Below, in pieces: positions 19,201-45,700 of a stretch of 64,000 bases of DNA (position 1 is its first letter; each line of letters starts with the position of its first letter). A program made the translations under genes and the position numbers. Source of the stretch: Phallusia mammillata (Eukaryota); contig OZ281500.1 in assembly GCA_965637545.1 (NCBI GenBank), forward strand, positions 24,180,001-24,244,000. The letters run 5' to 3'. Under the pieces are notes generated by a model. The model saw only the letters and a list, made by a program, of their open reading frames with translations, had not been told where the DNA came from and ran no database searches.

Positions 19201-19506
19201 CCCAATCCATTCAGGGATCGGTACCTCTAGGTATCGTTCCTCCCGGTCAGTCGTTATGTAGGTTAATTCTGGTTCGAAGATAATGTAGTCTTGGCCTGAT
19301 ATATTGGTTGAAACGTTCTCATTGCTGATGTTGCTTATTGTTTCTCCATTGAAACTGAGTGTTGGTAAGTCCGTGTAGTAATCCCCAATCCATTCAGGGA
19401 TCGGTACCTCTAGGTATCGTTCCTCCCGGTCAGTCGTTATGTAGGTTAATTCTGGTTCCAAAATAATTTCCGTGAAGTTCCGAGCGCTTGTGTTGTGCAT
19501 TGCCAT
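16217..19506 (-). CDS. Class A GPCR R2 (588 aa) with triplicated 61-aa ectodomain module
   Basis: Exons 19506-18573, 18185-17895, 17589-17441, 17078-16937, 16867-16765, 16364-16217; intact frame and GT-AG sites; ends NSTSV-stop. Confidence 0.85.
17081..17170. repeat. 16-bp minisatellite (GTGACGTAAYAAGATT) x ~5 at the R2 exon-4 acceptor
   Basis: Direct reading of 17081-17170; paralogous introns carry only about two units. Confidence 0.85.
18920..19466. repeat. Coding tandem repeat, 183 bp x ~3, in R2 exon 1
   Basis: TAATTCTGGTTC recurs at 19081, 19264 and 19447 (period 183); units 19101-19283 and 19284-19466 are almost identical. Confidence 0.95.
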
Positions 19507-21278: not shown

Positions 21279-24180
21279 TCACACCGATGTTGAGTTTGTT
21301 GCTTTGCTTCTAGCAGGGGATTTTGTAGGTTTGTCGTTCTTGCAGAGACGAGAAACTGTGAGAAGATCTCGAGCTGATTTGGTAAAGTTTTTGTCGCGGA
21401 AACTGTAAACGACCACGTTCACTAAACTGGAAAAAAAATAAGATGTTGTTGTCTTTATCGGACTTTTTTAGCATAGTTTGTAAGCTTGCGGACAACATTC
21501 AGTGTGACGTTACAATTAATTTACTGTGACGTCACATCACAACGTAATCTATATAAACGGCTACATGCTTGATGTAAGATTTTTTTGCGTCACTGATGAT
21601 GTCAATTAAACTACTGCTAATTGCATGACATTGTTAACCACGTTTTGCGGCAGAAAAATTATGTATTAATTTATTAAAGGGTCGTCAAGTTGGTTAAGTG
21701 ATTTGCTGTGATGGTAATAAATGATAAATTGAGTTAGTTCAAGTTTTCATGAGTTCACCTGATTATCACTACATCTTATAATCCAATGAGCGTAGCGTAA
21801 GTTTACCTGTTCGACATGCTGAGATAGAAACACAGCATGAAGGGGAGTGAAGCCGTGTCGCACGTTAAGGACTTCCCGAAGAACAGAACTTGCACAACGA
21901 TCAGTGGAACTGGAAGGAAGATTTGAGTGTAAAGTGAATTGTCTGAAAAGCTCCGATCGTAAAGTACTTCAACTTACCAATGGTGAGAGTGAAGCCAATC
22001 TGCATAAGGATCACTGTCACGAACATGCGAACTTCTCTTTTATCTGTCTTCTGCCGAAGTTGGTTGGATGTCTGCTGGTTGATGTGAACCACAATGATGG
22101 TTGCGACACAAGCGAGGCTCTGTGATGACGTAGTAAGATTATGACGTAACAAGACTGTGACGTATATGACCTTGAAATTTGACCTCTAATTTTCTTAGTA
22201 TTGATAAAAGTGAAAGCTATTTAATATTGACGTGCATGACCTTGAATTTTGACCTCTAATTGTCATTGTGAAATTCTTGAAATTCTGTTTTGGCAAGTGT
22301 TTATTAACGTAAACGTTAGGAAAAAGCTAATTCCGGTTAATAACAAAATCTGTTTAATTGCAATTTTAGTTCAACTCAAACTTTCGTCCATCACTTAAAG
22401 GTCAATGATTTTTGCAACTTGAGTTAAAGGAAAAACTACAGTTCGATAAGTCATGTTTGAGACTCAATGCTTGTAATAAACTTTTCACACATTACCATTA
22501 TGACGTAGGGAATGACGTAGAAAACAATGAGCATAGCAACGAGAGCATTGTGGCTTCCGTCTCGATTTTGTATTTTCTTCTCAGTGAAGAAGAACAGGAA
22601 TGTCGTGTGCTGATACGTGTACACCATCGAATCAGGAAACCAGGCTGAAAATCATGTTGATTTGTCACAATAAAATATCTTGTTGTTGTTTCGACAAATC
22701 TAATTCAAAATTTTGGCAATTTTGTTTTTATCTGAGGGAGTGTTCAGTGTGTTTTAGAAATACCCATTTGAAAACAAGTTAGATAATGTTTGTAAATTTT
22801 TCTTGCTTGACAAAATATGTGCATACACATTGGCATTCATCAATATGCGTATAAACTTTTAACTTCTCTTTAGTGATTTCTAGTTTCATTGGAGAACTTA
22901 GTTATTTTCAACATTTAAAGCAGTTTCATACCTGGTACGGTGCTAGACACGACAGCCAAAGCCCAAACCACAGCCAAACCGACGTAGACGTGAAAATCAC
23001 TTCGCGTCCGGTATGAGATTGGCCACTTGATGGCGTACAAGCGCTGTGTACCCATGAACACTAGGTGGTACAAAGAGCAGGTGAATGTAAGAAGGAGAAA
23101 GATTCCTCCCACAGTCGCTTGAGCTGATCCTCGCAGTGAAAGTTGACGCTGATCTAATTCCATCGAGGTAACGTTCATCGTCCGACTGAAGTTGTAGATT
23201 GGAACCACCAGAAGTTGGACGCCTGAAAAACATATGAACAAATCCGGACTTGAAGCACCAAAAAATGCAAACGGTTTAACTGATGTTGCATGGCTGTCTT
23301 TGGAGCATTACCTTTTACTAACTGTTTACTACTTAGATCGGACATGTAGGGACTGATTCTTATAAAATCACAGGTTGACAGGTCTACAAGGGACATTATG
23401 CTGCACCAAGTCTGTCAGTCAAGCATTTGGCCACGCTCACAAACGTATAGGTAAGAACAATGAACCAAGTTACAGATGTATGTCTGTGAACATCGAACTT
23501 TTTACATGCTGCCTACGTAAGGACTTCGATAGATTGGTCTTACATAGAGCTCAATTTTGTACTTTTCAATAATATCCCCAAATGTGTTTACCAGTGAGAA
23601 AATCAGCGATAGCCAAAGAGAATTTCATCTTGTCGAAACTTTGACGGAGCCCGAGTTTCTTTAACACCACCATTACAAGTACGTTGCCGAACACACAGGC
23701 CAGACCGAGCAGGACGACGAAAAATACGAAAAATCCCGCTCCTGTCTTGCTGCATTCAGCACATGCGCACAGTGGTGTGTTCGCACATGCGCTGTAGGCC
23801 TTGTTGGAGCAAAAAGCGGGAAAACCACACAACTTTGATGTAAAATTTCGGAACCAATACAGCCAAGTTTTGTTGATAGTGTTGTTGAATCCATCAGAAA
23901 AGTCGCTTGTTGTGTTGATTCCAAAGCGCGTATTGTAGTCTTGGCCTGATATATTGGTTGAAACATTCTCAATGCTGATATTGCTTAATGTTTCCCCTAC
24001 GTTGCCAGTTGTTGGAGAGGTATTGCTTGTTAAGAGCTGTCTCAAATATTTTAGAACCTCGTAACGACTTAACGACTCTCGGATAACTAATACATAGGCC
24101 CCGCCGCCACTTGATTCAATTATAACCGAGGCGTCATCGTAGTTTGAGGAGTTCGTACTACTTGTGTTTTGCAATGCCAT
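21279..24180 (-). CDS. Class A GPCR R3 with proximal first exon V5 (473 aa)
   Basis: Exons 24180-23592, 23222-22932, 22644-22496, 22119-21978, 21909-21807, 21426-21279; intact, GT-AG. Confidence 0.85.
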
Positions 24181-25011
24181 TGCGAGTTTAGATAAGTTTT
24201 TTACCCAATGTATTCTTAAAATGAAGAAGTTTTTTTAACTTATGCTTAAATGAGAGTTCCGCGATCACCCAAAGGAACACTTTTGCTACACAAGTAAACC
24301 CTGTTCTTTTTTACATTTAAATAAGAAACTTAACGTATAATCAAAAAAGCTAAAAAAGAATGTAAAATATAAACTTCCAACTGATCTTGCTTTCGTTGCA
24401 ATAATGAATGTAAAGGTTGTTGCTAAGTGGGAAGTTAAAACGTTCAGTAAAAAACATTTGAAAGCTGAACCCTCCTGGTTATATACACGTAAGAAACGTT
24501 GTCTAATCTTCTTCGTGTTTCCTTTTTAACTTTAGTTTGTTTCTATATTCACACTGATACATTCAGAATTCTTACCAACTTGTCTGTTATCTGTCCATCA
24601 TTTTTGGCTGAAAAACACACATGTCTTGCTGCCAATGTACTTTCATGTGTGGAATCAATTTTACAAGAATCACTAAAAAAGTGCCTGATCTTAGCGCTGT
24701 GCCTAAATACTAAACCGTGCCATTACTTCTGTCACGAACATAGAATTTCTGTTAAGACCAACCATTGCAAAACTGCATCGCAATAATCGTCATATTAAGC
24801 AAGTTTTGCAGCATAACAACATATCCGATGTCACGATCATGTTTCGGTATGTTTAAAGTAGAAAACCTAAGATCCGTACGAACATGTGCGCCAGTACGAA
24901 GGGGTAATAGCCTCCTTCCCTCATTTGGTATATCATTGTCCCAAATTTAACTTAAATTTAGCATATTTTACCAAAAAATGTTGATGAATGAAAACGTGTC
25001 ATGTTCTAAGA

Positions 25012-25207
25012 CAGTAGTTCTCAATATTTCAGTGTCGAGGTCAAATGGTAGTTTTTTAAGTGTATAAGGAGCTGCAAAATCACTAAAGATTTTTACTTTG
25101 AAATCTAAAATAGCAATCTTTAGTGGTTTTCTGCGGTCTGGTGCGAGCCACAAAATAAGTTGTTGGGAGCCGTATGCGGCCCTGAGAGCCGCGGTTAAGA
25201 AATACTG
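25012..25207. mobile_element. hAT-type MITE (paralogue at 34793-34993)
   Basis: Imperfect CAGT..TTCTCAA-type TIRs; same position in the duplicated spacer. Confidence 0.6.
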
Positions 25208-25824
25208 TTCAAAAAAGTTATAAAGAAAAATTTGTTCAGGGATGCACCGAAGCTTTGGTTGGCTGCAAAATTCTGTCGAAGTATTTCCTTGTGTCGGTTT
25301 TGGCTCAGACACATTCAACATTGCGTTCTTTACTTGTTTCTAAGAGAATAGACTGATAACGTAGAGCGATGGTGAAGTCAGGCATAGTTTAGTAATTTAC
25401 GTACAATTTGTTTCGAAAACAGACTTTGATTTGTTGTACGAAATTTTGCTTATTCTGATGTGTATTTTTTTGTGTAAGTTCGCATGGATCCCATGTTTTG
25501 TGAGGTTTAAAGCCTAAATATACACTAAAGTTTTTGCATTTTGTTGTATTATTTGGAAAAATTTGTGAATAAGAATTTTTTGTGGTTTAATAAATTACAA
25601 GTTACGTCATAGTCCGGAAACACGCAGCACCCAATAAGCGCAACAGATGTTTTTAGGTAACCCTGCATAAAAGACTGAACAACGAAAGTGTACATTTCGA
25701 ATTACATTTACCACTGCCTTTTGCGCATGTTGCTTGTGCATGTATCCAGTAAGATGGCCAGATGGACCGTAGTTATCGTTACAAATTATTACTGGGATAT
25801 CAATAGTATAAAAAATATCTTTAC

Positions 25825-26278
25825 CTGTTAGAAAATCGACGACAGCCAAAGAGAACTTCATCTTGTTGAAACTTTGACGGAGCCCGAGTTTCTTTAACAC
25901 CACCATTACAAGTACGTTGCCGAACACACAGGCCAGACCGAGCAGGACGACGAAAAATACGAAAAATCCCGCTCCTGTCTTGCTGCATTCTGCGCATGCG
26001 CACAATGGTGTGTTCGCGCATGCGCTGTAGGCCTTGTTGGAGCAAAAGGCGGGAAAACCACATAATTTTGAAACAAGGATGAGACGCAAACTCGGTCCAG
26101 TGGCGTTAAATCGATTAAAATTAGTAGGACTGTTGTTATATTTGGTGCCAAGGTTTTCTAAACCCGACCATTCTTTCGGTATGAAGTATTTTTCATCTAT
26201 TCTATCAGTGGTTATCAAGTGGGGCGTCCCTACAAATATACTTAAAAAATACGTGGCGTTTATTTGTGACAAATCCAT
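25825..26278 (-). CDS. Surplus GPCR first exon V6 (MDLSQ type), candidate alternative exon 1 of R3
   Basis: 454 nt, open, donor ACAG|GTAAAG; no exons 2-6 between it and V5. Confidence 0.7.
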
Positions 26279-26916
26279 GTCAAATTTACTTGAAGTTGTA
26301 TTGCCAGTTTTATGTTGATTTCAAAACTGAATTGAGAAAAAAAGGGATTTAGTATGTGTTCAATTTCTTCCAAGATTTCTTGCCAACCGTAACTATTTCT
26401 AACAATTTAGCGCTGATAACATATCGTTTGTCCTATAATTTCACTTCCAATCTTTTCCACAAATAATTTACTCAACGTTTTGCCAAAGCTGATTTTGCCT
26501 ACAAGTCATCAAATAATTACATTTCGACGTAAAAACTCAATAAATCATCAATAGAAAACTCTTTTCCCTCTTAAAAAATAACTTATAATGTCAGGGCGCC
26601 TGATACTTCTAAACTCCGTATCCGGACATCAACGTGTTTACAAACGCTCAACTAGTTCATGTGACTCATCGGGTCGTATGTTGTTTGTGTACGAGTGCTT
26701 GGTCTGGCGCACGGACGGTGTTGCCATGGTTACGAGTGACGAATGTGACATCAGACAAAGGAACACCGAAAATACTTTACAGAAAAGAGGACTTGTTATT
26801 GCATTGATAAAAATATATTCTGTCAAAACAGTTCGTGGTTTTGTGTCTAAGAAAATAGTTTAATGCTGTATTAGCGATACAACCGAACTAACATCATCCT
26901 TAACTATTTCACTAAC

Positions 26917-27505
26917 CAGTGAGAAAATCGGCGACAGCCAAAGAGAACTTCATCTTGTTGAAACTTTGACGGAGCCCGAGTTTCTTTAACACCGCCATTA
27001 CAAGTACGTTGCCGAACACACAGGCCAGACCGAGTAGGACGACGAAAAATACGAAAAATCCCGCTCCTGTCTTGCTGCATTCTGCGCATGCGCACAGTGG
27101 TGTGTTTGCGCATGCGCTGTAAGCCTTATTGGAGCAAAAGGCGCGAAAACCACACAATTTTGAAGTTGTGAAATTTCTGAACCGATACAGTATAGTTTTG
27201 TTAAAAGTGCTGTTGAATCCTCCAGAAAAGTTAATTCCTTCAGAAAAGTTGAATCCCTTAGTTAAACTGCTTGTTGTGTTGATTTCAAAGCTCGTATTGT
27301 TGACTTGGCCTGATATATTGGTTGAAACGTTTCGAGTGCTGATGTTACTTAATGTTTCTGCGTTAAACTCCAGTATTGGCAAGTTATCGTAGCCGACTCC
27401 AGCTGGCCACTGATTTGAATCATCCTGGTAATAGTAGAATAGTTCTCTAACCGCCATTACGTAATAATAACTTGTTACGCTGAGAAAATTTTGAAGCGCT
27501 TCCAT
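26917..27505 (-). CDS. Surplus GPCR first exon V7 (V3 paralogue), candidate alternative exon 1 of R3
   Basis: 589 nt open from ATG 27505, donor G|GTTAGT. The ATG homologous to V3 (27518) is out of frame and ends after 23 codons, so the exon may be partly decayed. Confidence 0.55.
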
Positions 27506-29069: not shown

Positions 29070-31927
29070 TCACACCGATGTAGAGTTTGTTGCTTTGCTT
29101 GCAGCAGGGGATTTTGTAGGTTTGTCGTTCTTGCAGAGACGAGAAGCTGTGAGAAGATCTCGAGCTGATTTGGTGAAGTTTTTGTCGCGGAAACTGTAAA
29201 CGACCACGTTCACTAAACTGGAAGAAAAATAAGATGTTGTTGTCTTTATCTGACTTTGTTACTAAACTGGATTGTAAACTTGCGGAAAACCTTCACTGTG
29301 ACGTGACAATTAATTCGCTGTGACGTCACATCACAACGTAATCTGTATAAACGTCTACATGCTTGATGTAAGATTTTATTGCGTCACTGATGATGTCACA
29401 AGCTGTTAACCATGTCGTGCGGCAGAAACATTATTGAATATTATATGTAAGGGTTGTCAAGTTGGTTAAGTAGTTTGTTGTTGTGGGTATACCAATATAT
29501 TTGTATACAAATAATATAACAGAATTGCAACTTGGATTAGTTCAAGTTTTTATGAGTTCACCTGATTATCACTACATCTTATTATCCAATGAGCGTAGCG
29601 TATATTCACCTGTTCGACATGCTGAGATAGAAACACACCAGGAAGGGAAGTGAAGCCGTGTCGCATGTTAAGGACTTCCCGAAGAACAGAACTGGCACAA
29701 CGATCAGTGGAACTGGAAAGGAAGATTTGAATGTAAACTGAATTGTTTCAAAAAGCTCCAATCGTAAAGTAGTTTAACTTACCAATGGTGAGAGTGAAGC
29801 CAATCTGCATAAGGATCACTGTCACGAACATGCGAACTTCTCTTTTATCTGTCTTCTGCCGAAGTTGGTTGGACTTCTTCTGGTTGATGTGAACCACGAT
29901 GATGGTTGCGACACAAGCGAGACTCTGTTGTGACGTAACAAGGCTGTGATGACCTTAAATTTTGACCTCCTATTTTCATTGTAAAATTCTTGAACGTTTG
30001 TTTTGGAAAATGTCTATGAATGTAAACGTTAGGAAAAAGCTGATACATGCGATTGCGGTTAATAACAAATTCTGTTTAATAGCAACTTTTAGTTCAACTC
30101 AAACTTTCGTTTATCTCCACGAACTCGATGATTTTGCAATTTGAGTTAAAGGAAACTTTGCAGTTTGATAAATTATGTTTGTGAATCACTTCGTGTCATA
30201 AACTTACCATTATTACGTATGGAATGACGTAGAAAACAATGAGCATAGCAACGAGAGCATTGTGGTTTCCGTCTCGATTTTGTATTTTCTTCTCAGTGAA
30301 GAAGAATAGGAATGTCGTGTGCTGATAAGTGTACACCATCGAATCAGGAAACCAGGCTGAAAATCATGTTGATTTGTCACAATAAAATATATTGTTGTTG
30401 TTTCGACGAATTTTATTTCAAATTTTAGCAATTTTGTTTTATATGAGTATGTTTTTAGTAAGTTTTGGAAATATTCAATGGAAAACGAATTAGACATTTT
30501 TTGTAAGTTTGTGTTGCTTGACAAAATATGTACATAAACATTGGCATAATGTTCAACAACATGCGGACAAACTCTTTACTTCTCCAGTGATTTTAAGTTT
30601 CATTGTAAAACTTAGTTATTTTCAACATTTGATGCATGTCATACCTGGTACGGTGCTGGACACGACAGCCAAAGCCCAAACCACGGCCAAGCCGACGTTG
30701 ACGTGAAAATCGCTTTGCATCCGGTACGAGAGTGGCCATTTGATGGCGTACAAGCGCTGCGCACCCATGAACACTAGGTGGTACAAAGAGCAGGTGAATG
30801 TAAGAAGGAGAAAGATTCCTCCCACAGTCGCTTGAGCCGATCCTCGCAGTGAAAGTTGGCGCTGATCCAATTCCGTCGACGAAACGTTCATCGTCCAACT
30901 AAAGCTGTAGATTGCAACCACCAGGAGTTGGACGCCTGAAAAACATACATGACTAAATTTTAACGCACCAAGGAATGAGAAACATTTTAATTGATAAATA
31001 AATGCTGCCAGGCATAATGTACAAACGAGTATTGCTCTTCCAGCAGTTTTTATTACAAACTATCCAGATTTTGACATCACATATAAAACGTCTTATCAGG
31101 ATAATAGCGTATCTTGCAAGATAAATTATTTTTCACTGATGTTGTATGGCTGCCTTTGGAGCATAACCTTTTACCAATTCTTTACTCGGAAAAGTAGCGT
31201 TCAAGTTTGCCCACAGTAAGGACTGATTCGTATAAAATCACAGGTTGGCAGGCTTGCAAGGGACGTTATGCTGAACCATGTCTGCCAGCCAAGCATTTGG
31301 CCACGCCCACAAACGTAGGTTAGAAATATGAACAAAGTTACAGATGTACGTCTTTGAAAATCGAACTTCTTGCATGCTGCCTACGTAAGGACTTCGATAG
31401 ATTGGTCTTACATAGAGCTCAATTTTGTACTTTTCAATAATATCCCCAAATGTTTTTACTTGTGAGAAAATCGGCGACAGCCAAAGAGAATTTCATCTTG
31501 TCAAAACTTTGACGGAGCCCGAGTTTCTTTAACACCACCATTACAAGTACGTTGCTGAACACACAGGCCAGACCGAGCAGGACGACGAAAAATACGAAAA
31601 ATCCCGCTCCTGTCTTGCTGCATTCTGCGCATACGCGCAGTGGTGTGTTCGCGCATGCGCTGTAGGCCTTATCGGAGCAGATGCGAGAAAACCACACAAA
31701 ATGTTGGTTAAAACGTTCTCATTGCTGATGTTGCTTTTAGTTTTCCCAACGTTGCCAGTTGTTAGTGAGAAATTGTTGTTTGAGATGGTCAACATTTTTT
31801 CAAGTTCGTAAGAACTTAACGACTCTCGGATAACTAATACATTGGCCCCGCCGTCATTTGAGTTAATCATAACCCAGGTGTCGTCGTAATTTGAGAAGTT
31901 CGTACTACTTGTGTTTTGCAATGCCAT
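29070..31927 (-). pseudogene. GPCR R4: intact body (exons 2-6) with frameshifted proximal first exon V8
   Basis: V8 31927-31460 is 468 nt (not 3n+1): 39-codon deletion plus a 1-nt loss in GFPAFC (gcatctgctcc), giving a stop at 31541. Body exons 30935-30645, 30356-30208, 29924-29783, 29712-29610, 29217-29070 are all open with GT-AG sites. Confidence 0.8.
31003..31120 (-). mobile_element. Decayed short Penelope-derived element in R4 intron 1
   Basis: Begins TGCTGCCAGGCATAA and aligns to the 49808 copy; core degraded to CTGATAAG; absent from paralogous introns. Confidence 0.55.
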
Positions 31928-32664
31928 TGCGAGTTCAGATAAGTTTTCCACGCAAGGTCTAAAATGCAATCTTAAAATGGAGAAGTTTTTTTTAACTTTT
32001 TCTAAAACGTAAATAAGAGTTCCGCGATCACCCAAAGGAACACTCTTGAAAGTTTCAATAAACTCTTTTCTACATTTAGATAAGAAACTTTTAATTGAAA
32101 AAACGAAATACGAATGTAATAAACAACTTGACCAACTGATCTTGCTTTCGTTGCAATCTTTGTTATATTTTTTAAAAATAATGAAAGTAAAGGTCGTTGC
32201 TAAAAACATTTTGAACCTGAACCCTCATGGTTATATACACGTAAAAAACGTTGTCTAATCTTCTTAGTTTTTCCTTCATAAGTGTAGTTTCTTTTCTGTA
32301 TTCACACTGATACATTCAGACATCTAACCAACTTGCCTGTTGTTTGTCAATCATTTTTGGCTGAAAAACACTCATGTCTTGCTGCCAATGTGATTTCATG
32401 TTGTGAATCTATTTTACAAGAATTACTGAAAAAATCTTAGCGCTGTGCTTAAATAGTTATACCGTGCCATTACTTCTGCCACGAACATAAAATTTCTGAT
32501 TTAAAAGACCAGCCGTGGCACTGCATCGCAACCACCGTGATGTTAAAAAAGTTATCTAGCATAGCAGCATATCCGATGTTATACATAACATGATCATGAA
32601 TACACTGTTGCTGCCAGGCATAACGTATTAACAGAATTTTTAGCTCTTCCGGCAGTTTTTTATT

Positions 32665-32730
32665 GTAATATGCCAACGTTTCGATGTCCCATACGAAACA
32701 CCTTCATCAGGGTAATGACATACATTGCAA
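32665..32730 (-). ncRNA. Minimal type I hammerhead ribozyme motif in inverted Penelope arm
   Basis: Reverse complement of the 34507-34572 motif (tcatcag 32704-32710, aacgtttc 32675-32682). Confidence 0.7.
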
Positions 32731-33614
32731 ACACAAGTTATTATAAAGCGAAAAGGGCGGCGAAACACACACAAAAAAGGCGATAGAAATAACGCAGTGC
32801 GCACCAATGGTCGTGTGATAACACCTGGCTCAATGGTGCAAAAGCGACCGATAAGTTATCGGCATTAGAACGTCCGTTTTAACGTTCATCGTGTTGGTGT
32901 GAGAATGTATGTTCCACGACTCCAGGAAACCTCGCTTGTGAAAATCGGTTTCTCTAGCTAACACCTGGGCAGCAGAGAAGTTTATGGTGTGAGCGAGGGT
33001 AGTAGCATGTTGTGCTAATGCCGATTTTTTAGCATCTTTTTTGGCTACATCCCTCTCGTGTTCTTTACGGCGCGTATTCAGAGATCTTCCCGTTTCGCCA
33101 ATGTAAATCTCCTTGCACTGTTGACATGGGATCGCGTACACCACACCCCTTGCTGCGTTTGTATCAATGGGATCTTTGGGGTGCGACAGCATCTGACGTA
33201 GGGTGTTGACTGGTTTAATCCCTACTGAGACCCCAAAGTCGATTAACATGCGACGTATTACGTCTGTTAACCTAGGAATGTATGGCAAGGTAACAAATGT
33301 ACGCTCTTTGGACTGAACCTTTTTCCGAGCACCCGTGGTTTTTCGGTCACGGAGGATCCAGTTCGGGTAGCCATTTAACCGCAGGGCCTGGTGTACCCTT
33401 CGTATTACAGGCAACAGACGGGAGACTTTCCACGCAAGTGTACCACAAACCAACGAGCACCAGGCGCTACTTGCATTTCACGTCTCACCATCCTCTACAC
33501 CACAAGAGAGCTGTGGTGAAATCGCTGACAGATCAGGCCCGAAGGTTGACCACAGAACCCGGAATGCTCCAAACCGAATTACGAAGGGTACACCAGGCCC
33601 TGCGGTTAAATGGC

Positions 33615-33814
33615 NNNNNNNNNNNNNNNNNNNNNNNNNNNNNNNNNNNNNNNNNNNNNNNNNNNNNNNNNNNNNNNNNNNNNNNNNNNNNNNNNNNNNN
33701 NNNNNNNNNNNNNNNNNNNNNNNNNNNNNNNNNNNNNNNNNNNNNNNNNNNNNNNNNNNNNNNNNNNNNNNNNNNNNNNNNNNNNNNNNNNNNNNNNNNN
33801 NNNNNNNNNNNNNN
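33615..33814. other. Assembly gap (200 N) with overlapping flanks
   Basis: 33562-33614 is identical to 33815-33867 (53 bp). Confidence 0.95.
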
Positions 33815-34506
33815 GAATGCTCCAAACCGAATTACGAAGGGTACACCAGGCCCTGCGGTTAAATGGCTACCCGAACTGGATCCTCCGTGACCGAAAAACC
33901 ACGGGTGCTCGGAAAAAGGTTCAGTCCAAAGAGCGTACATTTGTTACCTTGCCATACATTCCTAGGTTAACAGACGTAATACGTCGCATGTTAATCGACT
34001 TTGGGGTCTCAGTAGGGATTAAACCAGTCAACACCCTACGTCAGATGCTGTCGCACCCCAAAGATCCCATTGATACAAACGCAGCAAGGGGTATGGTGTA
34101 CGCGATCCCATGTCAACAGTGCAAGGAGATTTACATTGGCGAAACGGGAAGATCTCTGAATACGCGCCGTAAAGAACACGAGAGGGATGTAGCCAAAAAA
34201 GATGCTAAAAAATCGGCATTAGCACAACATGCTACTACCCTCGCTCACACCATAAACTTCTCTGCTGCCCAGGTGTTAGCTAGAGAAACCGATTTTCACA
34301 AGCGAGGTTTCCTGGAGTCGTGGAACATACATTCTCACACCAACACGATGAACGTTAAAACGGACGTTCTAATGCCGATAACTTATCGGTCGCTTTTGCA
34401 CCATTGAGCCAGGTGTTATCACACGACCATTGGTGCGCACTGCGTTATTTCTATCGCCTTTTTTGTGTGTGTTTCGCCGCCCTTTTCGCTTTATAATAAC
34501 TTGTGT

Positions 34507-34572
34507 TTGCAATGTATGTCATTACCCTGATGAAGGTGTTTCGTATGGGACATCGAAACGTTGGCATATTAC
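34507..34572 (+). ncRNA. Minimal type I hammerhead ribozyme motif in Penelope 3' end
   Basis: CTGATGA 34527-34533, stem II GGTGT/ACATC, then GAAACGTT (palindromic stem III, predicted cut after 34562), CC/GG closing stem I. One extra A sits between core and stem II. Confidence 0.7.
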
Positions 34573-34792
34573 AATAAAAAACTGCCGGAAGAGCTAAAAA
34601 TTCTGTTAATAACATGATCATGATCATGTTTTGGTATTTTAAGAAGAGAAAACCTATCCATGTGCACACGAGCATGGGCGCCAGTACGAAGGGGTAATGT
34701 CTCCTTCCCTCACCTGGAATATCATTGTAACTGAAAATTAGCATATTTCGCCAAAAAATCCTGATGAATGATAAAAGTGCCATGTTCTAAGT

Positions 34793-34993
34793 CAGTGCTT
34801 CTCAACCTTTTTTAATATCGGGGCCAAATGGTAGTTTTTTAAGTGTGTAAGGAGCTGCTAAACATGACTAAAGATTATAACCTTGAAAGCTAACATAGCA
34901 ATCTTTGGTGGTTTACTAAAGGTCTGGTGCGAGCCACAGAACAAGCAGTTGGGAGCCGCATGCGGCCCTGATAGCCGCGTTTGAGAATCACTG
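34793..34993. mobile_element. hAT-type MITE
   Basis: TIRs CAGTGCTTCTCAA / TTGAGAATCACTG. Confidence 0.65.
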
Positions 34994-35587
34994 TTCAAAT
35001 AGAGTTATAGTTATAGAGAGAAACCAGTCCTATTTACGTATCTGGTGTTGTTTCCCTATCTTCTTCCGGTTTGCTGCTTTTGGAACTGACAAAATGATAC
35101 ACGTGATAGATGCGTAGCTATATGTTAGGATTTTAATATAGCAGAGCAGTGGTTCTCAACTCGTTTCAGGTCATAGACCATGAGCCCAGTCAAACTAACT
35201 TCATGGACCATTCCTTTTTTTTAATGAGATTGATGTAAGCATACGCAGCAAGAAGTTCCACTTGAAACAAAATTCTTTGACCTCCTAGTTTTTGCATTTC
35301 ATAGCAATATTTGGAAAAAAAGTTGTGGAAAAAAATGTTTTTGTGGTGTGTTAAGTTATAAATTACGTCATAGTCCAGCCAAAAGCAGCACCCAATACGC
35401 ACAACAGAAGTTTTAAGGTAACCATGCATAAAAGACTGAGCTACGCAAGTGTGCATTCCGAATTGCATTTACCACTGCCTTTAGCGCATGTTGCTTGTGT
35501 ATGCATCCAGTAAGATATGGCCAGATGGACCATAGTTATCGTTACAAATTATTACTGGGATATCAATGGTATAAAAAATATCTTTAC

Positions 35588-36236
35588 CTGTTAGAAAATC
35601 GACGACAGCCAAAGAGAACTTCATCTTGTTGAAACTTTGACGGAGCCCGAGTTTCTTTAACACCACCATTACAAGTACGTTGCCGAACACACAGGCCAGA
35701 CCGAGCAGGACGACGAAAAATACGAAAAATCCCGCTCCTGTCTTGCTGCATTCTGCGCATGCGCACAATGGTGTGTTCGCGCATGCGCTGTAGGCCTTGT
35801 TGGAGCAAAATGCGGGAAAACCACACAACTTTGAAATTGTGAAATTTCTGAATCGATACAGCCCAGTTTTGTTGACAGTGTGGTTGAATCCACCAGAAAA
35901 GTTAAATTCATCATAAAAGTTGGTTTCATTAGAAAAGTTGAATCCATCAGGAAAGGTAAATCCATCAGTAAAGTTGCTTGTTGTGTTGATTCCAGAGCTC
36001 GTATTGTTGACTTGATTGGATATATTGGTTAAAACGTTTTCAGCGCTGATGGCACTCACTGTTTCTTCATTGAAACTGAGTTCTGGCAAGTTAATGTCGT
36101 CATCTCCACCCCATGTATAGATTGGTTCCCATGCGTAACGTGTTTCTTGTACTCGGTCAGCCGTTACAATGTGCATCGAAATAAGGCCAAAGTCAAAATC
36201 CGAAGCGTTCGTGTCACTTGTGTTTTGCATTGCCAT
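35588..36236 (-). CDS. Surplus GPCR first exon V9 (MAMQN type), candidate functional exon 1 of R4 (493 aa if spliced to 30935)
   Basis: 649 nt (3n+1), open, donor ACAG|GTAAAG; the next exon 2 downstream is that of R4. Confidence 0.7.
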
Positions 36237-36239
36237 TGT

Positions 36240-37934
36240 GAATGCAGATAATGTTGTATTTAAATGTCAAAAACTGAAATGTTATTTTAAAATAAAGAAT
36301 TTTTTTTACAAATTGAACACTCTTCAGCCCCAAGGTTCGATTTAATTTCCTATTTGAATATAAAACTTCAACTGAAAAAGCTAAATAAATAATCTTAATT
36401 GACCGATCAAAATAACAACTTTAACAGATCAAAACCATCAACAGCATGGCTTAAACTGACAATCACTGTTTGCCTTTTTAACCATAAAAGAGTGAAACCA
36501 ACGGACGATAAAATTCTTGGTAAAACAGATGATGGCACATAGGCGAAAAATATATATTCCTTAACTGACTGATTTTGTTTTCGTTGCAATTTCTGTGTTA
36601 ATTAGAATGCATGTGAAGCTTGTTATTAAGAGGAAAGTGATAACGTTCACTATAAAAACCTTTCGAACCTGAACACGAACAAGTTGTCTTCTGCAACTTT
36701 TGCTTAGTTGTGAAATCATACGAAACCTTGCCTAACCATCCAACAATTTTGTTGGTTTGTTTCTATATTCACACTAAGATATGCAGAAATCTAACTCACC
36801 TGTTTGCTGTTTGTGCATCAAAATAATTGCAAAGTTTTAAACGAAACTCACTATAGTAGTACGATATTATAGCATATCATGTGTTGCTTCAAATATGCAT
36901 CATGATATAATTAAACTGTATTTCTACAACTAAAGTCATGCAAGGTCTTTGCGTTGAACTTATAACAACAATGCTATTACTTCGGTCACGAACACAGAAT
37001 TCCCGTTCAAAAATTCCAGACACTTCGAATTTGCAACGCAACAACCCTAATGTTAGGGAAGTCAGCCAGTATAGTTTATTGCAACATATCTGACCTTTCG
37101 ATTCTGTTTCAGTATTTTCAAAGTAAACCTCCGTAAAACAACACGAATTTACAAAGTTCAATTAATACAGAAAGAAAGCAGAATCAAATGCAGGTGGTAA
37201 GGTTTATGAAAAAACTTTCGACAAATGTTATATTCATTTTGTTTGTTCATTATAAAATGGTTAAACCAGTGATGCACCGAATTTTCGGTTGGATAAAATC
37301 ATTTTTATATTTTTTGATGACAACCAATTCTTGCAGACTGATGTGCTATATTGACACATATTGGATTGCTTAAGTATAGTAAACAACAGTTAAACTGGAT
37401 TCGGTTATTCCAGATCTTTGCAAAATTCGGACAAAACTCGAGGTACAAATGATTTGTTAAGTGGCAAGGCTTGAACTAATCCAGATCTTCTCCGAACTAT
37501 TTTTTTGGTAAATACGGGTCCAGATTAACCAAGGTTTGCTTAAATCTTTTCTTTTTTTCCGCATTACTGCCACGCCTCCAATGCAGCGGCTCATATTCAA
37601 ACTCAATGCGACCTGATGAGTCATTTTTAAATAGTGATGCGCCAAATGTTTTGGACAAGCATTTCCTTGTTTCGGTTCGGCTTCAACTTAAGAAAAATTC
37701 CAACCGAAGTTTCCACAGACATCATATGTTGGACCATAGCTTGAATTATTTTTAGTGTTTTGTCTGCCTGCAGTTCTGCACATTGTGACTCACGCACAGT
37801 ATCATGTCTAAATTTATCTAACTGCTTTAGTTAATTGTTCAGAACAGCAGATCCTAACTTAATAGCTAAGTATTGCAGAAATCAATGTAACTTAACTGAT
37901 TTGGACATCACAATATTGTAAATGTAGCAAGCTT
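36240..37934. repeat. Segmental duplication of the 5' flank of V9, paired with 42757-44469 (flank of V10)
   Basis: Visibly near-identical ~1.7 kb non-coding sequence; a more diverged third copy flanks V4 (19.5-20.6 kb). Confidence 0.85.
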
Positions 37935-38168: not shown

Positions 38169-38409
38169 TTATGAAACTAAAAGACGCATTTCTAAAAAGG
38201 TAAATAACATAATTGTTTGTACAAGTTTGTTAAAAGTGTACAGAGGATATATTTCAGACAGTAGTAGAAGATATTTTTCCAGTTTTATAAGAAACGATTG
38301 GGTGAGTTTCCTTTTTCTTCTGTTGGCAGCAACTTGAAACTGTAAAAGCTTTTTGGTCGCTTTGTTGAAAGTCTGGTCATAAAAACTGTAAATTATCACG
38401 TTCACCAAG
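38169..38409 (-). pseudogene. Orphan, frameshifted GPCR last exon (TM7/helix 8/C-tail relic)
   Basis: Acceptor ttttcag|C then LVNVIIYSFYDQTF. Restoring 1 nt near 38345 gives KKL.TVSSCCQQKKKETHPIVSYKTGEISSTTV-stop (38254). No matching exons 1-5 nearby. Confidence 0.7.
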
Positions 38410-39940
38410 CTGAAAAACAAACACAGTTTGGTGGTAAGGCGTTGTAAATTTGTAACGATTTAAAGTCTTCTTGCAAATACTCCCAGTTAGACTTAAAAAG
38501 TGTTATTTTGACTTAAAGACACCAACTGGACTCTGATTGGCCAGACACAGATGAAGTTTAAACTTGCTTTACATTGACTGAACGAGAATAAAAAAGATTT
38601 CACTTTTAAATTGGGTTGAAAAAACAAACAGAAAACTTCGTATCGATAAAAGTTTCATAGTCTTGTCGCGATCTTTAATACACATCACAGCTGCTATACG
38701 CTACATGTATGAAACCTGCGATTGTTTCAAATGCAAAAACTTCTTAAGTTCACCTGTTTGTCATCCCAAGATAGAAGCAGATCATGAACGGGAGCGAAAT
38801 ATTGTTGCAGTTCAGAGCATTTTCGTAGAACAGAATATTGACCAAAATAACTAGGACTGGAAAAGCAAAAGCGGAGGTTTTTAACGACATTCGAAAGTTA
38901 AAGCTTGGTTGACATAAAAAGACTGCGTTGAGAAACTGTTTTATATGCTTGTAGATACTGTCTTAGTGTGGATGCTGTCAAAACTAGAAATTATTTTGAT
39001 ACAAAAATTAATTGACACAGATAGTTACAATATTGTATAGAATGTATACATTTAGCGTTTAAACATAAACAAGAATGACTTCAAATACCAACATGTAAGA
39101 AAATAAAACTTGAATAATGATTTTTTGATTGAATAAGTGAGATTGTGCGTTGCCACCCACATTTGTCCATCTCTTACTGTGTAATATTTAGGAACACACG
39201 TTATTAACAATATTCGGTCATGTTCATCGGGGCTGAACAGTGATGTTTCACCAGCAGCGGTACCGTACACCGCAGGGTGTACCGCTGTGTTTGGGTGTCC
39301 TGGGGTATACCATATACAATTATACAATATACTTATGACCGGGTATCACATTAGGCAGGTTTATGAGATAAAATCGATTGAAACAAAAACAATTCCCAAA
39401 CGTGAACTTGTGATAGATTTACAGACGCTAGCTTTTTGAGATTTAAGTTGATGTAAATGCGGCGTTTGATTGGCCAAGTTTGGTTTGCAAAGATATTTTC
39501 CATTATTCATGTAAATTCGTTAAAGCAGCTAGTTGGGGTGAAACAACAACAACAACAACCGGTTTGAATGTGTGTGTTTTTATAGGGTTCTTATAAAACT
39601 TAGTGGTTTGTAAAACCCACTGACATAGGTATGATTTTCGATAACTAATATATACAATATGGCATTACAAATCATCGCATATATTTACCAAATAAACAAC
39701 ACTTTTGCACGAATTGCCAACAACCTTTGGTCTTTGCTGATGTATGTTACATTGCGCTAAGTCTGGTTTAAACAAATCACTTTGTTGGAAACAGAGCGTA
39801 TATTCCCAGCCCACCGAAAAATGCTGTCGTTTGTATGGTAACATTGCTGTGAAAACTGAAACCAGATTGGATCGCGCTATTCAGTTAAGTGGTCCCTTTA
39901 ATTACACTTGAGTTGAGTTGAGATGAGTTGAGTGGTTCCC

Positions 39941-42753
39941 TCACACCGATGTTGAGTTTGTTGGTTTGCTTCTAGCAGGGGATTTTGTAGGTTTGTCGTT
40001 CTTGCAGAGACGAGAAACTGTGAGAAGATCTCGAGCTGATTTGGTGAAGTTTTTGTCGCGGAAACTGTAAACGACCACGTTCACTAAACTAGAAGAAAAA
40101 TAAGATCTTTACCGGACTAACTCAAGCAGATAAATATACGGATGACATTTATTGTGAGGTGACAATTAAATTACTGTGACGTCACATCACAAAGCAATCT
40201 GTATAAGCGTATGCATGCCTGATGTAAGATTTTATTGCGTCACTGATGATGTCACAAGCTACTGCACCGAAATGCAATTGATCGCTTTATTTAAGGTTGG
40301 TCAAGTTGGTTAATTGAGTTGCTGTGATGGTAATAAATGATAACTTGAGTTAGTTCAAGTTTTTATAAGTTCACCTGATTATCACTTTATCTTATAATCC
40401 AATGAGCGTAGCGTATATTCACCTGTTCGACATGCTGAGATAGAAACACACCAGGAAGGGAAGTGAAGCCGTGTCGCATGTTAAGGACTTCCCGAAGAAC
40501 AGAACTGGCACAACGATCAGTGGAACTGGAAGGAAGATTGAATGTAAAGTGAATTGTCCCAAAAAGCTCCAATCGTAAAGTAGTTTAACTTACCAATGGT
40601 GAGAGTGAAGCCAATCTGCATAAGGACCACTGTCACGAACATGCGAACTTCTCGTTTATCTGTATTCTGCCGAAGTTGATTGGACTTCTTTTGGTTGATG
40701 TGAACCACAATAAAGGTCGCGACACAAGCGAGGCTCTGTTATGACGTAACAAGGCTGTGACGTATATGACCTTGAATTTTGACCTCTAATTGTCATTGTG
40801 AAATCCTTGAACGTTTGTTTTGGAAAATGTTTATGAATGTAAACGTTTGAAAAAAGCTGTTACATGCGATTGCGGTCAATAACAAGATCTGTTTAATAGC
40901 TATTTAAGTTCAACTCAAACTTTCGTTTATCTCCACGAACTCGATGATTTTGCAATTTGAGTTGAAGGAAACTTTGCAGTTTGATGAATTATGTTTGTGA
41001 ATCACTTCGTGTCATAAACTTACCATTATTACGTAGGGTATGACGTAGAAAACAATGAGCGTAGCAACGAGAGCATTGTGGCTTCCATCTCGATTTTGTA
41101 TTTTCTTCTCAGTGAAGAAGAACAGAAATATCGTGTGCTGATAAGTGTACACCATCGAATCAGGAAACCAGGCTGAAAATCATGTTGATTTGTCACAATG
41201 AAATATCTTGTTGTTGTTTCCAAGAATTTCATTATAAATTTTAGCAACTTTGTTTTATCTGAGGGCGTGTTCAGTCAGTTTGGAAAATATTCAATTGAAA
41301 ACGAATTAGACAATGTTTGTAAGTTTGTCTTGCTAGACAAAGTATGTACGTACACATTGGCATAATATTCATCAATAAGCGTGCTAACTCTTTACTGCCC
41401 TCTAGTGATTGCATGCTTTTTGAACAATTTGATTATTTTCAACATTTGATGCGGTTTCATACCTGGTACGGTGCTGGATACAAGAGCCAATCCCCAAACC
41501 ACAGCCAAACCGACGTAGACGTGAAAATCGCTTTGCATCCGGTACAAGAGTGGCCACTTGATGGCGTACAAGCGCTGTGCACCCATGAACACTAGGTGGT
41601 ACAAAGAGCAGGTGAACGTGAGAAGGAGAAAGATTCCTCCCACTGTCGCTTGAGCCGATCTTCTTAGTGAAAGTTGGCGCTGATCCAATTCCGTCGACGA
41701 AACGTTCATCGTCCAACTGAAGTTGTAGATTGAAACCATCAGAAGTTGGACGCCTGAAAAACATATGAACAAATCTGGACTTGAAGCACCAAAAAATGCA
41801 AACGGTTTAACTGATGTTGCATGGCTGTCTTTGGAGCATTACCTTATATTAACTGTTTACTACTTAGATCAGACATGTAGGGACTGATTAGTATAAAAAA
41901 TCACAGGTTGACAGGCCTGCAAGGGACGTTATGCTGAACCATGTCTGCCAGCCAAGCATTTGGCCACGCTCACAAACGTAGGTTAGAACAATGAACCAAG
42001 TTACAGATGTATGTCTGTGAAAATCGAACTTTTTACATGCTGCCTACGTAAGGACTTCGATAGATTGGTCTTATATAAAGCTCAATTTTGTCCTTTTCAA
42101 TAATATACCCAAATGTTTTTACCAGTGAGAAAATCAGCGATAGCCAAAGAGAACTTCATTTTTTCAAAACTTTGACGGAGCCCGAGTTTCTTTAACACCA
42201 CCATTACAAGTACGTTGCCGAACACACAGGCCAGACCGAGCAGGACGACGAAAAATACGAAAAATCCCGCTCCTGTCTTGCTGCATTCTGCGCATGCGCG
42301 CAGTGGTGTGTTCGCGCATGCGCTGTAGGCTTTATCGGAGCAAAATGCGGGAAAACCACACAGCTTTGAAGTTGTGAAATTTCTGAATCGATACAGCCCA
42401 GTTTTGTTGATAGTGCTTTTGAATCCACCAGAAAAGTTAAATCCTTCAGAAAAGTTATATTCATCAGAAAATTTGAATCCATTAGAAAAGTTAAATTCAT
42501 CAGTAAAGTTGCTTGTTGTGTTGATTCCAGAGCTCGTATTGTTGAGTTGATTGGATATATTGTTTAAAACGTTTTCAGCGCTGATGGCACTCACTGTTTC
42601 TTCATTGAAACTGAGTTCTGGCAAGTTAATGTCGTCATCTCCAACCCATGTATAGATTGGTTCCAATGCGTAACGTGTTTCTTCTACTCGGTCAACCATT
42701 GAAGAAGTGTGAATACCCGAATCGTGCGTATCACTTGTGTTTTGGATTGTCAT
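39941..42753 (-). CDS. Class A GPCR R5 (487 aa)
   Basis: Exons 42753-42123, 41753-41463, 41172-41024, 40735-40594, 40525-40423, 40088-39941; intact, GT-AG. Confidence 0.85.
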
Positions 42754-45700
42754 TGTGAATGCAGATAATGTTGTATTTAAATGTCAAAAACTGAAATGTT
42801 ATTTTAAAATAAAGATTTTTTTTTGGCAAATTGAACACTCTTCAGCCCCAAGTTTCGATTATTTTATATTTGAATATAAAACTTCAACTGAAAAAGCTAA
42901 ATAAATAATCTTAATTGACCGATCAAAATAACAACTTTAGTAACAGATCAAAACCATCAACAGCATGGCTTAAACTGACAATCACTGTTTGCCTTTTTAA
43001 CCATAAAAGAGTGAAACCAACGGACGATAAAATTCTTGGTAAAACAGATGATGGCACATAGGCGAAAAATATATATTCCTTAACTGACTGATTTTGTTTT
43101 CGTTGCAATTTCTGTGTTAATTAGAATGCATGGGAAGCTTGTTATTAAGAGGAAAGTGATAACGTTCACTATAAAAACCTTTCGAACCTGAACACGAACA
43201 AGTTGTCATCTGCAACTTTTGCTTAGTTGTGAAATCATACGGAACCTTGCCTAACCATCCAACAATTTTGTTGGTTTGTTTCTATATTCACACTAAGATA
43301 TGCAGAAATCTAACTCACCTGTTTGCTGTTTGTGCATCAAAATAATTGCAAAGTTTTAAACGAAACTCACTATAGTAGTACGATATTATAGCATATCATG
43401 TGTTGCTTCAAATATGCATCATGATATGATTAAACTGTATTTCTATAACCAGACTTATGCAAGGTATTTGCATTGAACTTATAACAATGCTATTACTTCG
43501 GTCACGAACACAGAATTCCCGTTCAAAAATTCCAGACACTCCGAATTTGCAACGCAACAACCCTAATGTTAGGGAAGTCAGCCAGTATAGTTTATTGCAA
43601 CATATCTGACCTTTCGATTCTGTTTCAGTATTTTCAAAGTAAACCTCCCTAAAACAACACGAATTTACAAAGTTCAATTAATACAGAAAGAAAGCAGAAT
43701 CAAATGCAGGTGGTAAGGTTTATGAAAAAACTTTCGACAAATCTTATATTCATTTTGTTTGTTCATTATAAAATGGTTAAACCAGTGATGCACCGAATTT
43801 TCGGTTGGATAAAATCATTTTTATATTTTTTGATGACAACCAATTCTTGCAGACTGATGTGCTATATTGACACATATTGGATTGCTTAAGTATAGTAAAC
43901 AACAGTTAAACTGGATTCGGTTATTCCAGATCTTTGCAAAATTCGGACAAAACTCGAGGTACAAATGATTTGTTAAGTGGCAAGGCTTGAACTAATCTAG
44001 ATCTTCTCCGAACTATTTTTTTGGTAAATACGAGTCCAGATTAACCAAGGTTTATTAAAATCTCTTCCTTTTTTCCGCATTACTGCCACGCCTCCAATGC
44101 AGCGGCTCATATTCAAACACAATGCGACCTGATGAGTCATTTCAAACAGTGATGCGCCAGATTTTCGATTGACTTAGAATAATCCTAAGCAACTACTTCC
44201 TTGTTTCGGTTCGGCTCCAACTTAAGAAAAATTTTCACCGAAGTTTCCACAGACATCATATGTTGGACCATAACTTGAATTATTTTTAGTGATTTGTCTG
44301 CCTACAGGCCTATACACGTTGTAACTCACGCACAGTATCATGTCTAACTATATCTAACTGTTTTAGTTAATTGTTCTGATCAGCAGATCCTAACTTACAG
44401 CTAAGTATTACAGGAATCAATATAGCTTAACTGATTTGGACATCACAATATTGTAAATGTAGTAAGCTTTTCCTGTATTTTATCAATTATTATTTGCTTT
44501 TTTTACATACTTCGTGTATATTGTGTCACTTTTCCGCATTATGACGTAACACAATGGCAAAACATCAAGAGAACCTATTTCTTTCAAAGTTAAACAACTG
44601 TTGGTTATGGTTTTATTACGAGGTTCTCGTAAAAATTTCACGTAAACAACGATGTATTTGACTAGTTCATGTTGCTCATTAGGTGGTATGTAGTTAAAGC
44701 ATGAGCAATTGCTATGTATGGACGATGTTGTTTAGATGCGGAATAAGAAATATACTAATGAACTGAAGTGCCCTGGTTACTGTTTGAAGTGGGTGTAAAA
44801 CTCTTTGCGGGGCAAATAAATAAGTGTCTGCCGATAAACTCGCTTTAACTGAAAACACCTAATGAGTAACTTTACCGGGATTTGAACTCATGACCTGTTG
44901 CTAACTGACGACCATAATATTAAATAACAATGCTTTTGTTGTTGAGACTTTTAATCAACTCTTCAAACTTTCGACACCTTAAACCGTTGTTTCCAAACCT
45001 TTTTCTGTATCCGACACACTACCAATCTAAACTCTTTCAGACTTAAAAGACACAAAAATCGGTTTGATGTGATTGGTGTAATTGTTTTTGGCCACATAAA
45101 GTTCATTTCAGCAATGCCACGCACACCAACATTTGTCATGAAATATTTACCTAAGTCAGTGGTTCTCTAACTTTTCAAGCATGCGGCGCATTAACAAACT
45201 CAATTTTTTATTCCGCAGCACACTTTGCATGCCAAAATAACAAAAGTTGTCAAAAGAAAGTTAATTCGCAACTCTAAAGTGATAAGTGAAATTGTTTTTT
45301 ATGGTACATAACAATAGTAAGCTTTTAAATGTTCATTTTGTCATGAAGTCCCAAAATACCACAGAATGGTAATTGTCTTTAAAATAGCGAGTATTTTGCG
45401 GAATGCTTGGAAATTGGTCACTGGTGCCTACAGTGATTGAAAAAAAATTCTATGTGCTCTCTAGAAAAAAAAATGACTGAAAAAATGCATGCGCACTACG
45501 AAAGAAAAAGTTGAATGACGTAGTCGTAAGGTAATGACGTCAGTCATTGTTTGCTGTACAAAAACACAATGCAGTATAACTGAGTAGTAATATACAAGAA
45601 AAATAAAACTATTTTTCGTTTCGAATATTGTAGTTCATTATGTGTGTAGTTCATGATGCTTCAAGCCGTCTGTAATTTTTTGTGATAAGTTATGTGCTTT

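Follow-up and report, generated by a model that had tools for sequence, protein, structure and literature searches.

A chimeric distal first exon as candidate partner of a receptor body with a dead proximal first exon in Phallusia mammillata

The receptor array and its R4 unit

The DNA considered here, a stretch of 64,000 nucleotides (nt) from the ascidian Phallusia mammillata (assembly GCA_965637545.1, contig OZ281500.1, positions 24,180,001 to 24,244,000; hereafter the window, whose own numbering is used below), holds a tandem array of intron-containing, six-exon receptor genes of the seven-helix type, all on the minus strand. Its first coding exons (V, 13 in number) exceed the gene bodies formed by the following exons (R, eight in number): R1 is preceded by V1-V3, R3 by V5-V7, R4 by V8 and V9, and every other body by one V exon. 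Three times, as V3-V2-V1 before R1, V7-V6-V5 before R3 and V9-V8 before R4, at least two tandem, phase-compatible coding first exons thus stand before a single body. A GT donor is present in 13 of 13 V exons, and the length of all 12 intact ones equals 1 modulo 3, which fits exon 2; V9, sharing this length rule, is therefore phase-compatible with exon 2 of R4. The subject of this report is the R4 unit, in which the proximal first exon V8 is dead and the body is open, and for which the original prediction, made from the letters of the DNA, had proposed rescue by the upstream exon V9.

The six-exon plan is shared with P0001, a protein of 438 residues derived from a P. mammillata mRNA (UniRef A0A6F9D...), whose exon boundaries at residues ~149, 246, 295, 352 and 386 are those of the exons in the window, and which, by tblastn onto the window, finds this plan again in the eight gene bodies. 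In the region made up of the Cys-rich motif and the first transmembrane helix (TM1), P0001 is 77-91% identical to the genes of the window. It matches the Pfam profile 7tm_1 with 67.9 bits over profile positions 1-260, and its nearest solved relatives, all of them distant (E ~1e-8), are CB1, NPY1R and the beta-1 adrenergic receptor; for R4 exon 2 taken alone, 7tm_1 is likewise the best Pfam match, at 27.9 bits and thus under the cut-off of 30.5. The array most likely consists of class-A (rhodopsin-like) G-protein-coupled receptor (GPCR) genes, and the name "trace amine-associated receptor 9-like" carried by P0001 is an automatic label only. Two class-A hallmarks, read by eye, are replaced by other motifs: TM3 ends in AQRLYAI, with QRL in place of DRY, so that E/DRY is absent, and TM7 reads NVVVY, which lacks the proline of NPxxY. 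As these departures are common to R1-R5 and P0001 (NVIIY in the latter), they represent family traits and not decay. The gene of P0001 lies just beyond the window on the opposite strand (C7:24250809-24253004; 91-94% identity over exons 1-3) and has a single first exon and a single body; P0001 is uninformative about a V9-R4 transcript.

The R4 body comprises five exons with 833 nt in total, all with the same lengths as in R1, R2, R3 and R5. An AG acceptor is found on every exon and a GT donor on all except the last, and the frame is open, which bears out the description given in the original prediction. Substitutions unique to R4 amount to 12 in 833 exon positions (1.4%) against 47 in 1078 intron positions (4.4%), and the resulting exon/intron ratio of 0.33 is the lowest among R1-R5 (range 0.33-0.68); indels unique to R4 number zero in the exons and 12 in the introns. 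A comparison of synonymous and non-synonymous changes on the R4 branch, which had been named as a check on the original prediction, gave six of each, where neutrality would give ~1:3.3 (binomial P 0.04), in line with the other four bodies. These substitution patterns are those of purifying selection acting along the branch of the R4 body, with no relaxation visible.

In V8, both lesions that had been reported are present when the exon is compared with V5: an in-frame deletion of 117 nt (39 codons) at ~31701, and a 1-nt deletion at ~31683 which shifts the frame just within CGFPAFC, a motif otherwise invariant. If V8 is read into the R4 body, a stop is reached after 128 codons. The donor CAA/GTAAAA (the slash marks the splice junction) is still present, as are acceptor-like YAG sites 38 and 74 nt before the ATG (31965 and 32001). 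No more than two lesions and few private substitutions are carried by V8, and since one post-death lesion in ~586 nt is to be set against the indel rate of the R4 introns (12 per ~1300 nt), the comparison would place the death of V8 at ~0.2 of the terminal branch, a figure with a very wide error.

V9 is open over its whole length, with a near-consensus donor following its last base at 35588, and encodes a glycosylated ectodomain, the Cys-rich motif, TM1 and the start of TM2. No sequence resembling exons 2-6 was found between V9 and V8 by tblastn of P0001 onto the window, so that the description of V9 as an intact upstream exon with no other body stands. Its origin is composite. V10, the sole first exon of R5 in the next gene, shares with V9 1.7 kb of 5' flank, in which the two differ by 62 substitutions in 1691 nt (3.7%; 96.3% identity) and eight indels. 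The final 249 nt of V9, on the other hand, show three differences from V6, all synonymous, against 16 from V10, and the start of the intron downstream of V9 (its first 300 nt) is homologous to that of V6 and not to that of V10; the position of V9 in the R4 unit (unit D) is also that of V6 in the R3 unit (unit C). With a V10-like 5' flank and ectodomain part joined to a V6-like 3' core and intron, V9 is by its sequence affinities a V10(5')/V6(3') chimera; the two parts were probably brought together in the conserved core, by unequal exchange or gene conversion.

The ectodomain parts of V9 (35837-36236) and V10 (42372-42753) differ at 37 of 382 positions (9.7%), as compared with 3.7% in the adjacent 1.7-kb flank, and 32 of the differences are non-synonymous and two synonymous (binomial P 0.008). 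Polarization with V7, V3, V5 and V4 assigns 12 non-synonymous and no synonymous changes to V10, and five non-synonymous and one synonymous to V9, while 17, located in the FNFS repeat region, are unassignable; the acceleration of the ectodomain thus appears to fall mainly on V10 and not on V9. The divergence looks as though, after copying, the ectodomain of the R5 gene had come under positive selection, and many of the differences fall in a mini-repeat, (D/N/E)(G/E)(F/Y)(N/K)FS, which carries N-glycosylation sequons. A search of the species' own genome with the V9 ectodomain found no second haplotype copy and no closer outgroup of the V9 locus.

Joined to the R4 body, V9 gives 1482 nt that translate into 493 residues followed by a stop, without internal stop, in agreement with the length first proposed. 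Seven hydrophobic segments are obtained on the Kyte-Doolittle scale (residues 175-193, 207-225, 254-272, 297-315, 347-365, 404-422 and 434-452), and the junction of V9 with R4 exon 2 is predicted to read ...AVVDFLTG/VQLLVVAIYSFSW..., across an intron which measures 4652 nt as assembled. Protein word searches with the V9 exon and with R4 exon 2 found nothing, and one with the conserved region of the V4 open reading frame (reach 179-569 residues) found P0001 alone as a matching family protein.

Table 1. Coordinates of the R4 unit, of its first exons and of the insertion between V9 and V8.
Feature	Position	Strand	Remarks
R4 exon 6	29070-29217	-	148 nt including TGA stop
R4 exon 5	29610-29712	-	103 nt
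R4 exon 4	29783-29924	-	142 nt
R4 exon 3	30208-30356	-	149 nt
R4 exon 2	30645-30935	-	291 nt, end of TM2 to TM4, acceptor tttttcag/G
Intron 1 of V8-R4 unit	30936-31459	-	524 nt
V8, dead first exon	31460-31927	-	468 nt, ATG at 31927, compared with closest paralogue V5
Target-site duplication, left copy	32587-32598		12 nt, AACATGATCATG; right copy 34611-34622
Penelope-like copy, 5'-truncated	32599-33404	-	head-to-head with plus-strand copy
Penelope-like copy, 5'-truncated, longer	33405-34610	+	reverse transcriptase C-terminal region and GIY-YIG; contains gap
Start of intron downstream of V9	35287-35587	-	homologous to sequence downstream of V6 (25529-25824), not to V10 intron
V9, intact first coding exon	35588-36236	-	649 nt (216 codons + 1 nt), ATG 36236, donor ACAG/GTAAAG
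V9 5' flank, presumed promoter/outron	36237-37934	-	copy of V10 5' flank 42754-44469

The interval between V9 and V8

A gap of 200 N (33615-33814), named as a caveat in the original prediction, lies inside the plus-strand member of a head-to-head pair of Penelope-like copies. Around it, two arms of 779 nt (32626-33404 and 33833-34611) form an inverted repeat with at most one mismatch. In these copies the GIY-YIG domain lies C-terminal to the reverse transcriptase region; Pfam GIY-YIG was detected at 32830-33453 on the minus strand with 22.9 bits (cut-off 22.6), and the C-terminal motif region of the reverse transcriptase was read by eye at 33405-33614 on the plus strand. The order of the two domains is that of Penelope-like elements of the GIY-YIG endonuclease clade, which, like the pair in the window, occur as 5'-truncated head-to-head copies with a target-site duplication; the window copies hold only the 3' 0.8-0.95 kb of the element. 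The 12-nt direct repeat AACATGATCATG flanks the pair, and such a match was obtained in 10 of 20000 shuffles.

The gap is bordered on both sides by one and the same sequence of 53 nt (33562-33614 and 33815-33867), which amounts to a dovetail overlap inside the plus-strand copy. From this exact overlap, the gap is probably spurious, an unmerged contig overlap, and the intron between V9 and R4 exon 2 would be ~4399 nt long, not 4652 nt. Outside the pair, the flanks can be compared with the R3 unit, where 31701-32579 corresponds to 23951-24831 and 34618-35009 to 24831-25222, that is, to adjacent positions (24831 and 24831). Since the outer flanks adjoin there, the R3 unit serves as an empty site, and the comparison indicates a single insertion. 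With arms that differ by at most one position in 779 nt, this insertion is very young. The physical order that the original prediction had left subject to the gap is accordingly supported by the overlap, the target-site duplication and the collinearity with R3: V9 and R4 share a strand, with V9 upstream, and further element sequence concealed in the gap would change neither the upstream position of V9 relative to V8 and R4 nor its orientation. The reading frame across the gap is irrelevant, as the gap is intronic or intergenic.

A misassembly as the source of the inverted repeat was considered and ruled out by the target-site duplication, by the collinearity with unit C and by other head-to-head pairs, the same arrangement being present at at least six other loci of the genome. 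The 3' 779 nt of the family recur in at least 40 genome copies with 93-100% identity, and the family is young and probably active. An older tail fragment, 84% identical, is located at 49796-49927.

Distal first exons elsewhere in the array

The original prediction had named V9-R4 as the best internal test of a model of variable first exons. A stronger one is offered by units A and C, in which V2 and V6, and V3 and V7, are positional counterparts. The spacers of the two units have diverged by 4.4%, with four 1-nt indels per 636 nt. The length differences between V3 and V7 (3, 8+13 and 36 nt) sum to a multiple of three, and both frames are open, without frameshift. All four exons have retained their ATG and donor and are free of stops and frameshifts, for which the probability is ~5e-4 if they had evolved neutrally since the split of A and C. 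V3 and V7, the exons of type b, moreover lack any proximal counterpart in the window from which conversion might have repaired them. This joint intactness suggests that distal first exons are probably used in this gene family, which raises the prior for V9.

V1, V2 and V3, and likewise V6 and V7, are separated by a near-constant spacer of 638 nt (11112-13866; 25825-27505), with 454-nt exons and a period of ~1.09 kb, a spacing that points to short tandem duplication of modules made of an exon plus its spacer. The donor G/GTTAGTGA, an unusual one, is common to V2, V3 and V7, and places a stop codon directly after the exon if unspliced. In V4, the first exon of R2 (18573-19506, minus strand), a segment of ~61 residues of the ectodomain is present in three tandem copies (EPELTYITTDREERYLEVPIPEWIGDYYTDLPT.SFNGET.SNIS.ENVSTN.S...).

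Most V exons are preceded, 25-75 nt before the ATG, by a pyrimidine-rich, acceptor-like YAG site (9 of 13 by a strict rule, as compared with 29% of random windows), and these sites occupy aligned positions in V 5' flanks that are otherwise diverged; the example before V9 is at ~36275. The AG of the V6 site was lost by a 1-nt deletion, and V5 carries a 9-nt deletion at the corresponding place. About half of the genes of Ciona undergo spliced-leader (SL) trans-splicing (PMC4691747), in view of which the YAG sites before the V exons are probably SL trans-splice acceptors. Given these acceptor-like sites, the rule of the protocadherin (Pcdh) and UGT1A clusters, by which variable exons are without acceptor, does not clearly hold in this array.

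A core of ~170 nt (35600-35770 in V9), encoding ...ECSKTGAGFFVFFVVLLGLACVFGNVLVM..KKLGLRQSF, is almost invariant in 13 of 13 V exons, at synonymous sites as well. Between subfamilies with only 77-85% identity in exon 2, the core is 92-96% identical, and the near-invariance extends to the dead V8; it may reflect either concerted evolution or an element acting at the nucleotide level. As the core is homogenized across the 13 V exons, and as the pairwise dN/dS of the dead V8 (0.24) is as low as that of live exons, dN/dS in the core is useless as a test of function.

Between R5 and V9, an orphan fragment resembling exons 5 and 6 is located at 38257-38851 on the minus strand, with exons 2-4 not nearby. 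In protein sequence, its exon 5 part (38756-38851) matches residues 355-386 of P0001 with 100% identity, which is better in exon 5 than the match given by the presumed own locus of P0001.

Readings of the R4 unit and comparison with known systems

The following history is proposed. The R4 unit would once have had a stack of first exons such as V3-V2-V1-R1 and V7-V6-V5-R3 still have, and its proximal exon V8 would recently have been killed by deletion and frameshift. The distal, V6-like position would have been taken by V9, its 5' flank and ectodomain copied from V10, its TM1 core and downstream intron being V6-like, and the Penelope-like pair would then have been inserted between V9 and V8, at which point the assembler broke. 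The promoter region copied from V10 would drive transcription from a start upstream of V9, a spliced leader possibly being added at an acceptor ~40 nt before the V9 ATG, and the V9 donor would be spliced ~4.4-4.65 kb past V8 to the acceptor of R4 exon 2. The product would be a seven-helix receptor of 493 residues that carries a V10-like ectodomain on the TM2-TM7 body of R4, and this body would have stayed under selection after the loss of V8, like the constant exons of UGT1A beside pseudo first exons. To the claim that V9 rescues the R4 body via a V9-R4 transcript we assign an about even chance, which modestly favors it over a young pseudogene and over a diverted V9 transcript.

In favor of such a rescue are the constraint on the R4 body, the frame that stays open from V9 through R4, the near-consensus donor of V9 and its 1.7 kb of V10 5' flank, which is indirect evidence of a promoter of its own, and the joint intactness of V2, V3, V6 and V7. 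Several observations weigh against it. With two lesions only in V8, the whole R4 unit may be a young pseudogene. Computed with the intron rates, the probability that a neutral R4 body is still intact equals 0.41, 0.10 and 0.011 for a neutral phase spanning 0.1, 0.25 and 0.5 of the branch, and for a death of V8 at ~0.2 of the branch it is ~0.2; a neutral V9 would be intact by chance with P 0.17, and the changes polarized to V9 (five non-synonymous, one synonymous; ~2.2% as compared with a neutral 1.85% per lineage) look neutral. Since the death of V8 appears recent, the intactness of R4 and of V9 is weak evidence for rescue. Of the word searches, those with the V9 exon and with R4 exon 2 were empty, and that with the V4 core gave only P0001, which comes from a different gene with one first exon and one body. 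The YAG sites before V8 could also capture the donor of an upstream V exon, so that V8 would trap the donor of V9; joined to the two sites before V8, the V9 frame ends prematurely, at codon 358 or 370. Finally, the proposed V9-R4 intron contains a Penelope-like copy that is sense-oriented and includes its 3' end. The original observation of an intact body beside a dead first exon is thus confirmed, and by itself it does not compel the conclusion of rescue; the configuration of a dead V8 and an intact R4 favors rescue modestly.

The alternative that survives best is that the R4 unit is a young pseudogene and V9 an unused by-product of a 2.4-kb copy of V10, or of a gene conversion, onto a V6-like exon. 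The recent death of V8, the neutral aspect of the V9 changes, the individual neutral probabilities for body and exon and the empty search for a transcript-derived protein of the R4 unit are all as this alternative would have them. It is less easily reconciled with the fact that V9 and the R4 body are both intact, for which the probability is about 0.03 if all were neutral, with the exon/intron ratio of R4, the lowest of the five bodies and without non-synonymous excess, and with the apparent maintenance of the other distal exons, by which distal exons are probably used. On this balance it is doubtful, and it deserves to be taken seriously.

A second alternative accepts that V9 is transcribed and holds that its donor is mostly captured before V8, or that its transcript ends in the sense-oriented Penelope-like copy, leaving R4 effectively silent since the very recent insertion or since the death of V8. 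The two sites before V8 combine YAG with pyrimidine tracts at positions conserved among V types, the frequency of trans-splicing in Ciona (PMC4691747) makes it probable that they are real acceptors, splicing of V9 to them yields premature stops, and the near-identity of the Penelope-like arms marks the insertion as very young. However, the stacks V3-V2-V1 and V7-V6-V5 face the same problem with distal exons that are still open, which argues that distal donors can bypass a proximal V exon, and 29% of random windows have acceptor-like sites too; this alternative is improbable.

It is more improbable still that V8 owes its frameshift to an assembly error or to a private allele, in which case a V8-R4 receptor with shortened ectodomain would work and V9 would be irrelevant. 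The 117-nt deletion is indeed in frame and the 1-nt loss falls in a short T run (GCATTTTGC as compared with GCATCTGC), but a substitution accompanies the loss, which is therefore no pure homopolymer slip, and three more substitutions unique to V8 cluster there, among them P>L in the invariant CGFPAFC motif; the search of the own genome with the V9 ectodomain supplied no second haplotype copy for comparison. Least credible of all is that distal V exons, V9 included, are stand-alone short genes for single-pass glycoproteins (ectodomain and TM1) unspliced to bodies, as the unspliced V9 frame of 251 residues to a stop in the intron and the ends of unspliced V2, V3 and V7 one codon past the donor might suggest, for all of them keep the phase 1 GT donors of the proximal exons and their read-through tails show no conservation from one V type to another.

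The array can be compared with known systems. In clusters of the UGT1A, protocadherin and GCNT2 type, frameshifted pseudo first exons stand beside functional constant exons, human UGT1A2 having a 1-nt deletion, and the variable parts evolve under positive selection (PMC1885805). Like the array, UGT1A, protocadherin alpha/gamma and GCNT2 have large tandem coding first exons in the same splice phase before one downstream set, and like the array they undergo birth and death of exons, with frameshifted pseudo first exons beside constant ones; UGT1A thus already provides an example of live constant exons with pseudo first exons next to them. A fast variable part is also common to both, as in the V9/V10 ectodomain (Nd 32, Sd 2; 9.7% vs 3.7%). 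Unlike UGT1A and Pcdh, the stacks of the array are short (2-3 exons) and are repeated together with their bodies as tandem genes, the protein is a class-A GPCR with the exon boundary inside TM2, and the V exons, known here from genomic sequence, have acceptor-like sites, possibly for SL addition, where the variable exons of Pcdh and UGT1A are without acceptors. P0001 belongs to the same family and has the same exon plan, but its gene, on the other strand, has one first exon.

In the Drosophila genes Gr28b, Gr39a and Gr23a, alternative large 5' exons, which encode the N-terminal helices, are spliced to shared 3' exons for the C-terminal helices. Insect Gr genes thus resemble the array in joining alternative 5' exons to shared 3' exons in seven-helix proteins of chemoreceptor type; they are unrelated to rhodopsin-like GPCRs, and most of their protein is variable, as compared with only the ectodomain and TM1 in the array. 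A narrow literature search found no description of stacked first exons in a rhodopsin-type GPCR family or in tunicates. That the array as a whole uses coding-first-exon stacks in the manner of protocadherins and UGT1A, setting different, fast-evolving and glycosylated ectodomains with TM1 on a shared TM2-TM7 body, with V9-R4 as a live example whose body would be kept in use by a chimeric distal exon taken from the neighboring gene, is put forward tentatively, at somewhat less than an even chance. In that case each first exon would be independently promoted or SL trans-spliced, and the ~170-nt V core could, beyond being a conversion tract, act at the nucleotide level in exon choice or splicing.

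Should V9-R4 not be expressed, the R4 unit would be an ordinary young pseudogene in a gene array subject to birth and death. The locus raises the general question of how a donor, in an organism with SL trans-splicing, passes over the acceptor of an alternative first exon farther downstream. If a V9-R4 mRNA exists, stacked alternative coding first exons, a design so far known from protocadherins, UGT1A and insect gustatory receptors, would operate in rhodopsin-type GPCRs of a chordate relative of the vertebrates, and exon shuffling between neighboring genes, here of a V10 ectodomain with a V6-like core, would be able to re-arm a receptor body.

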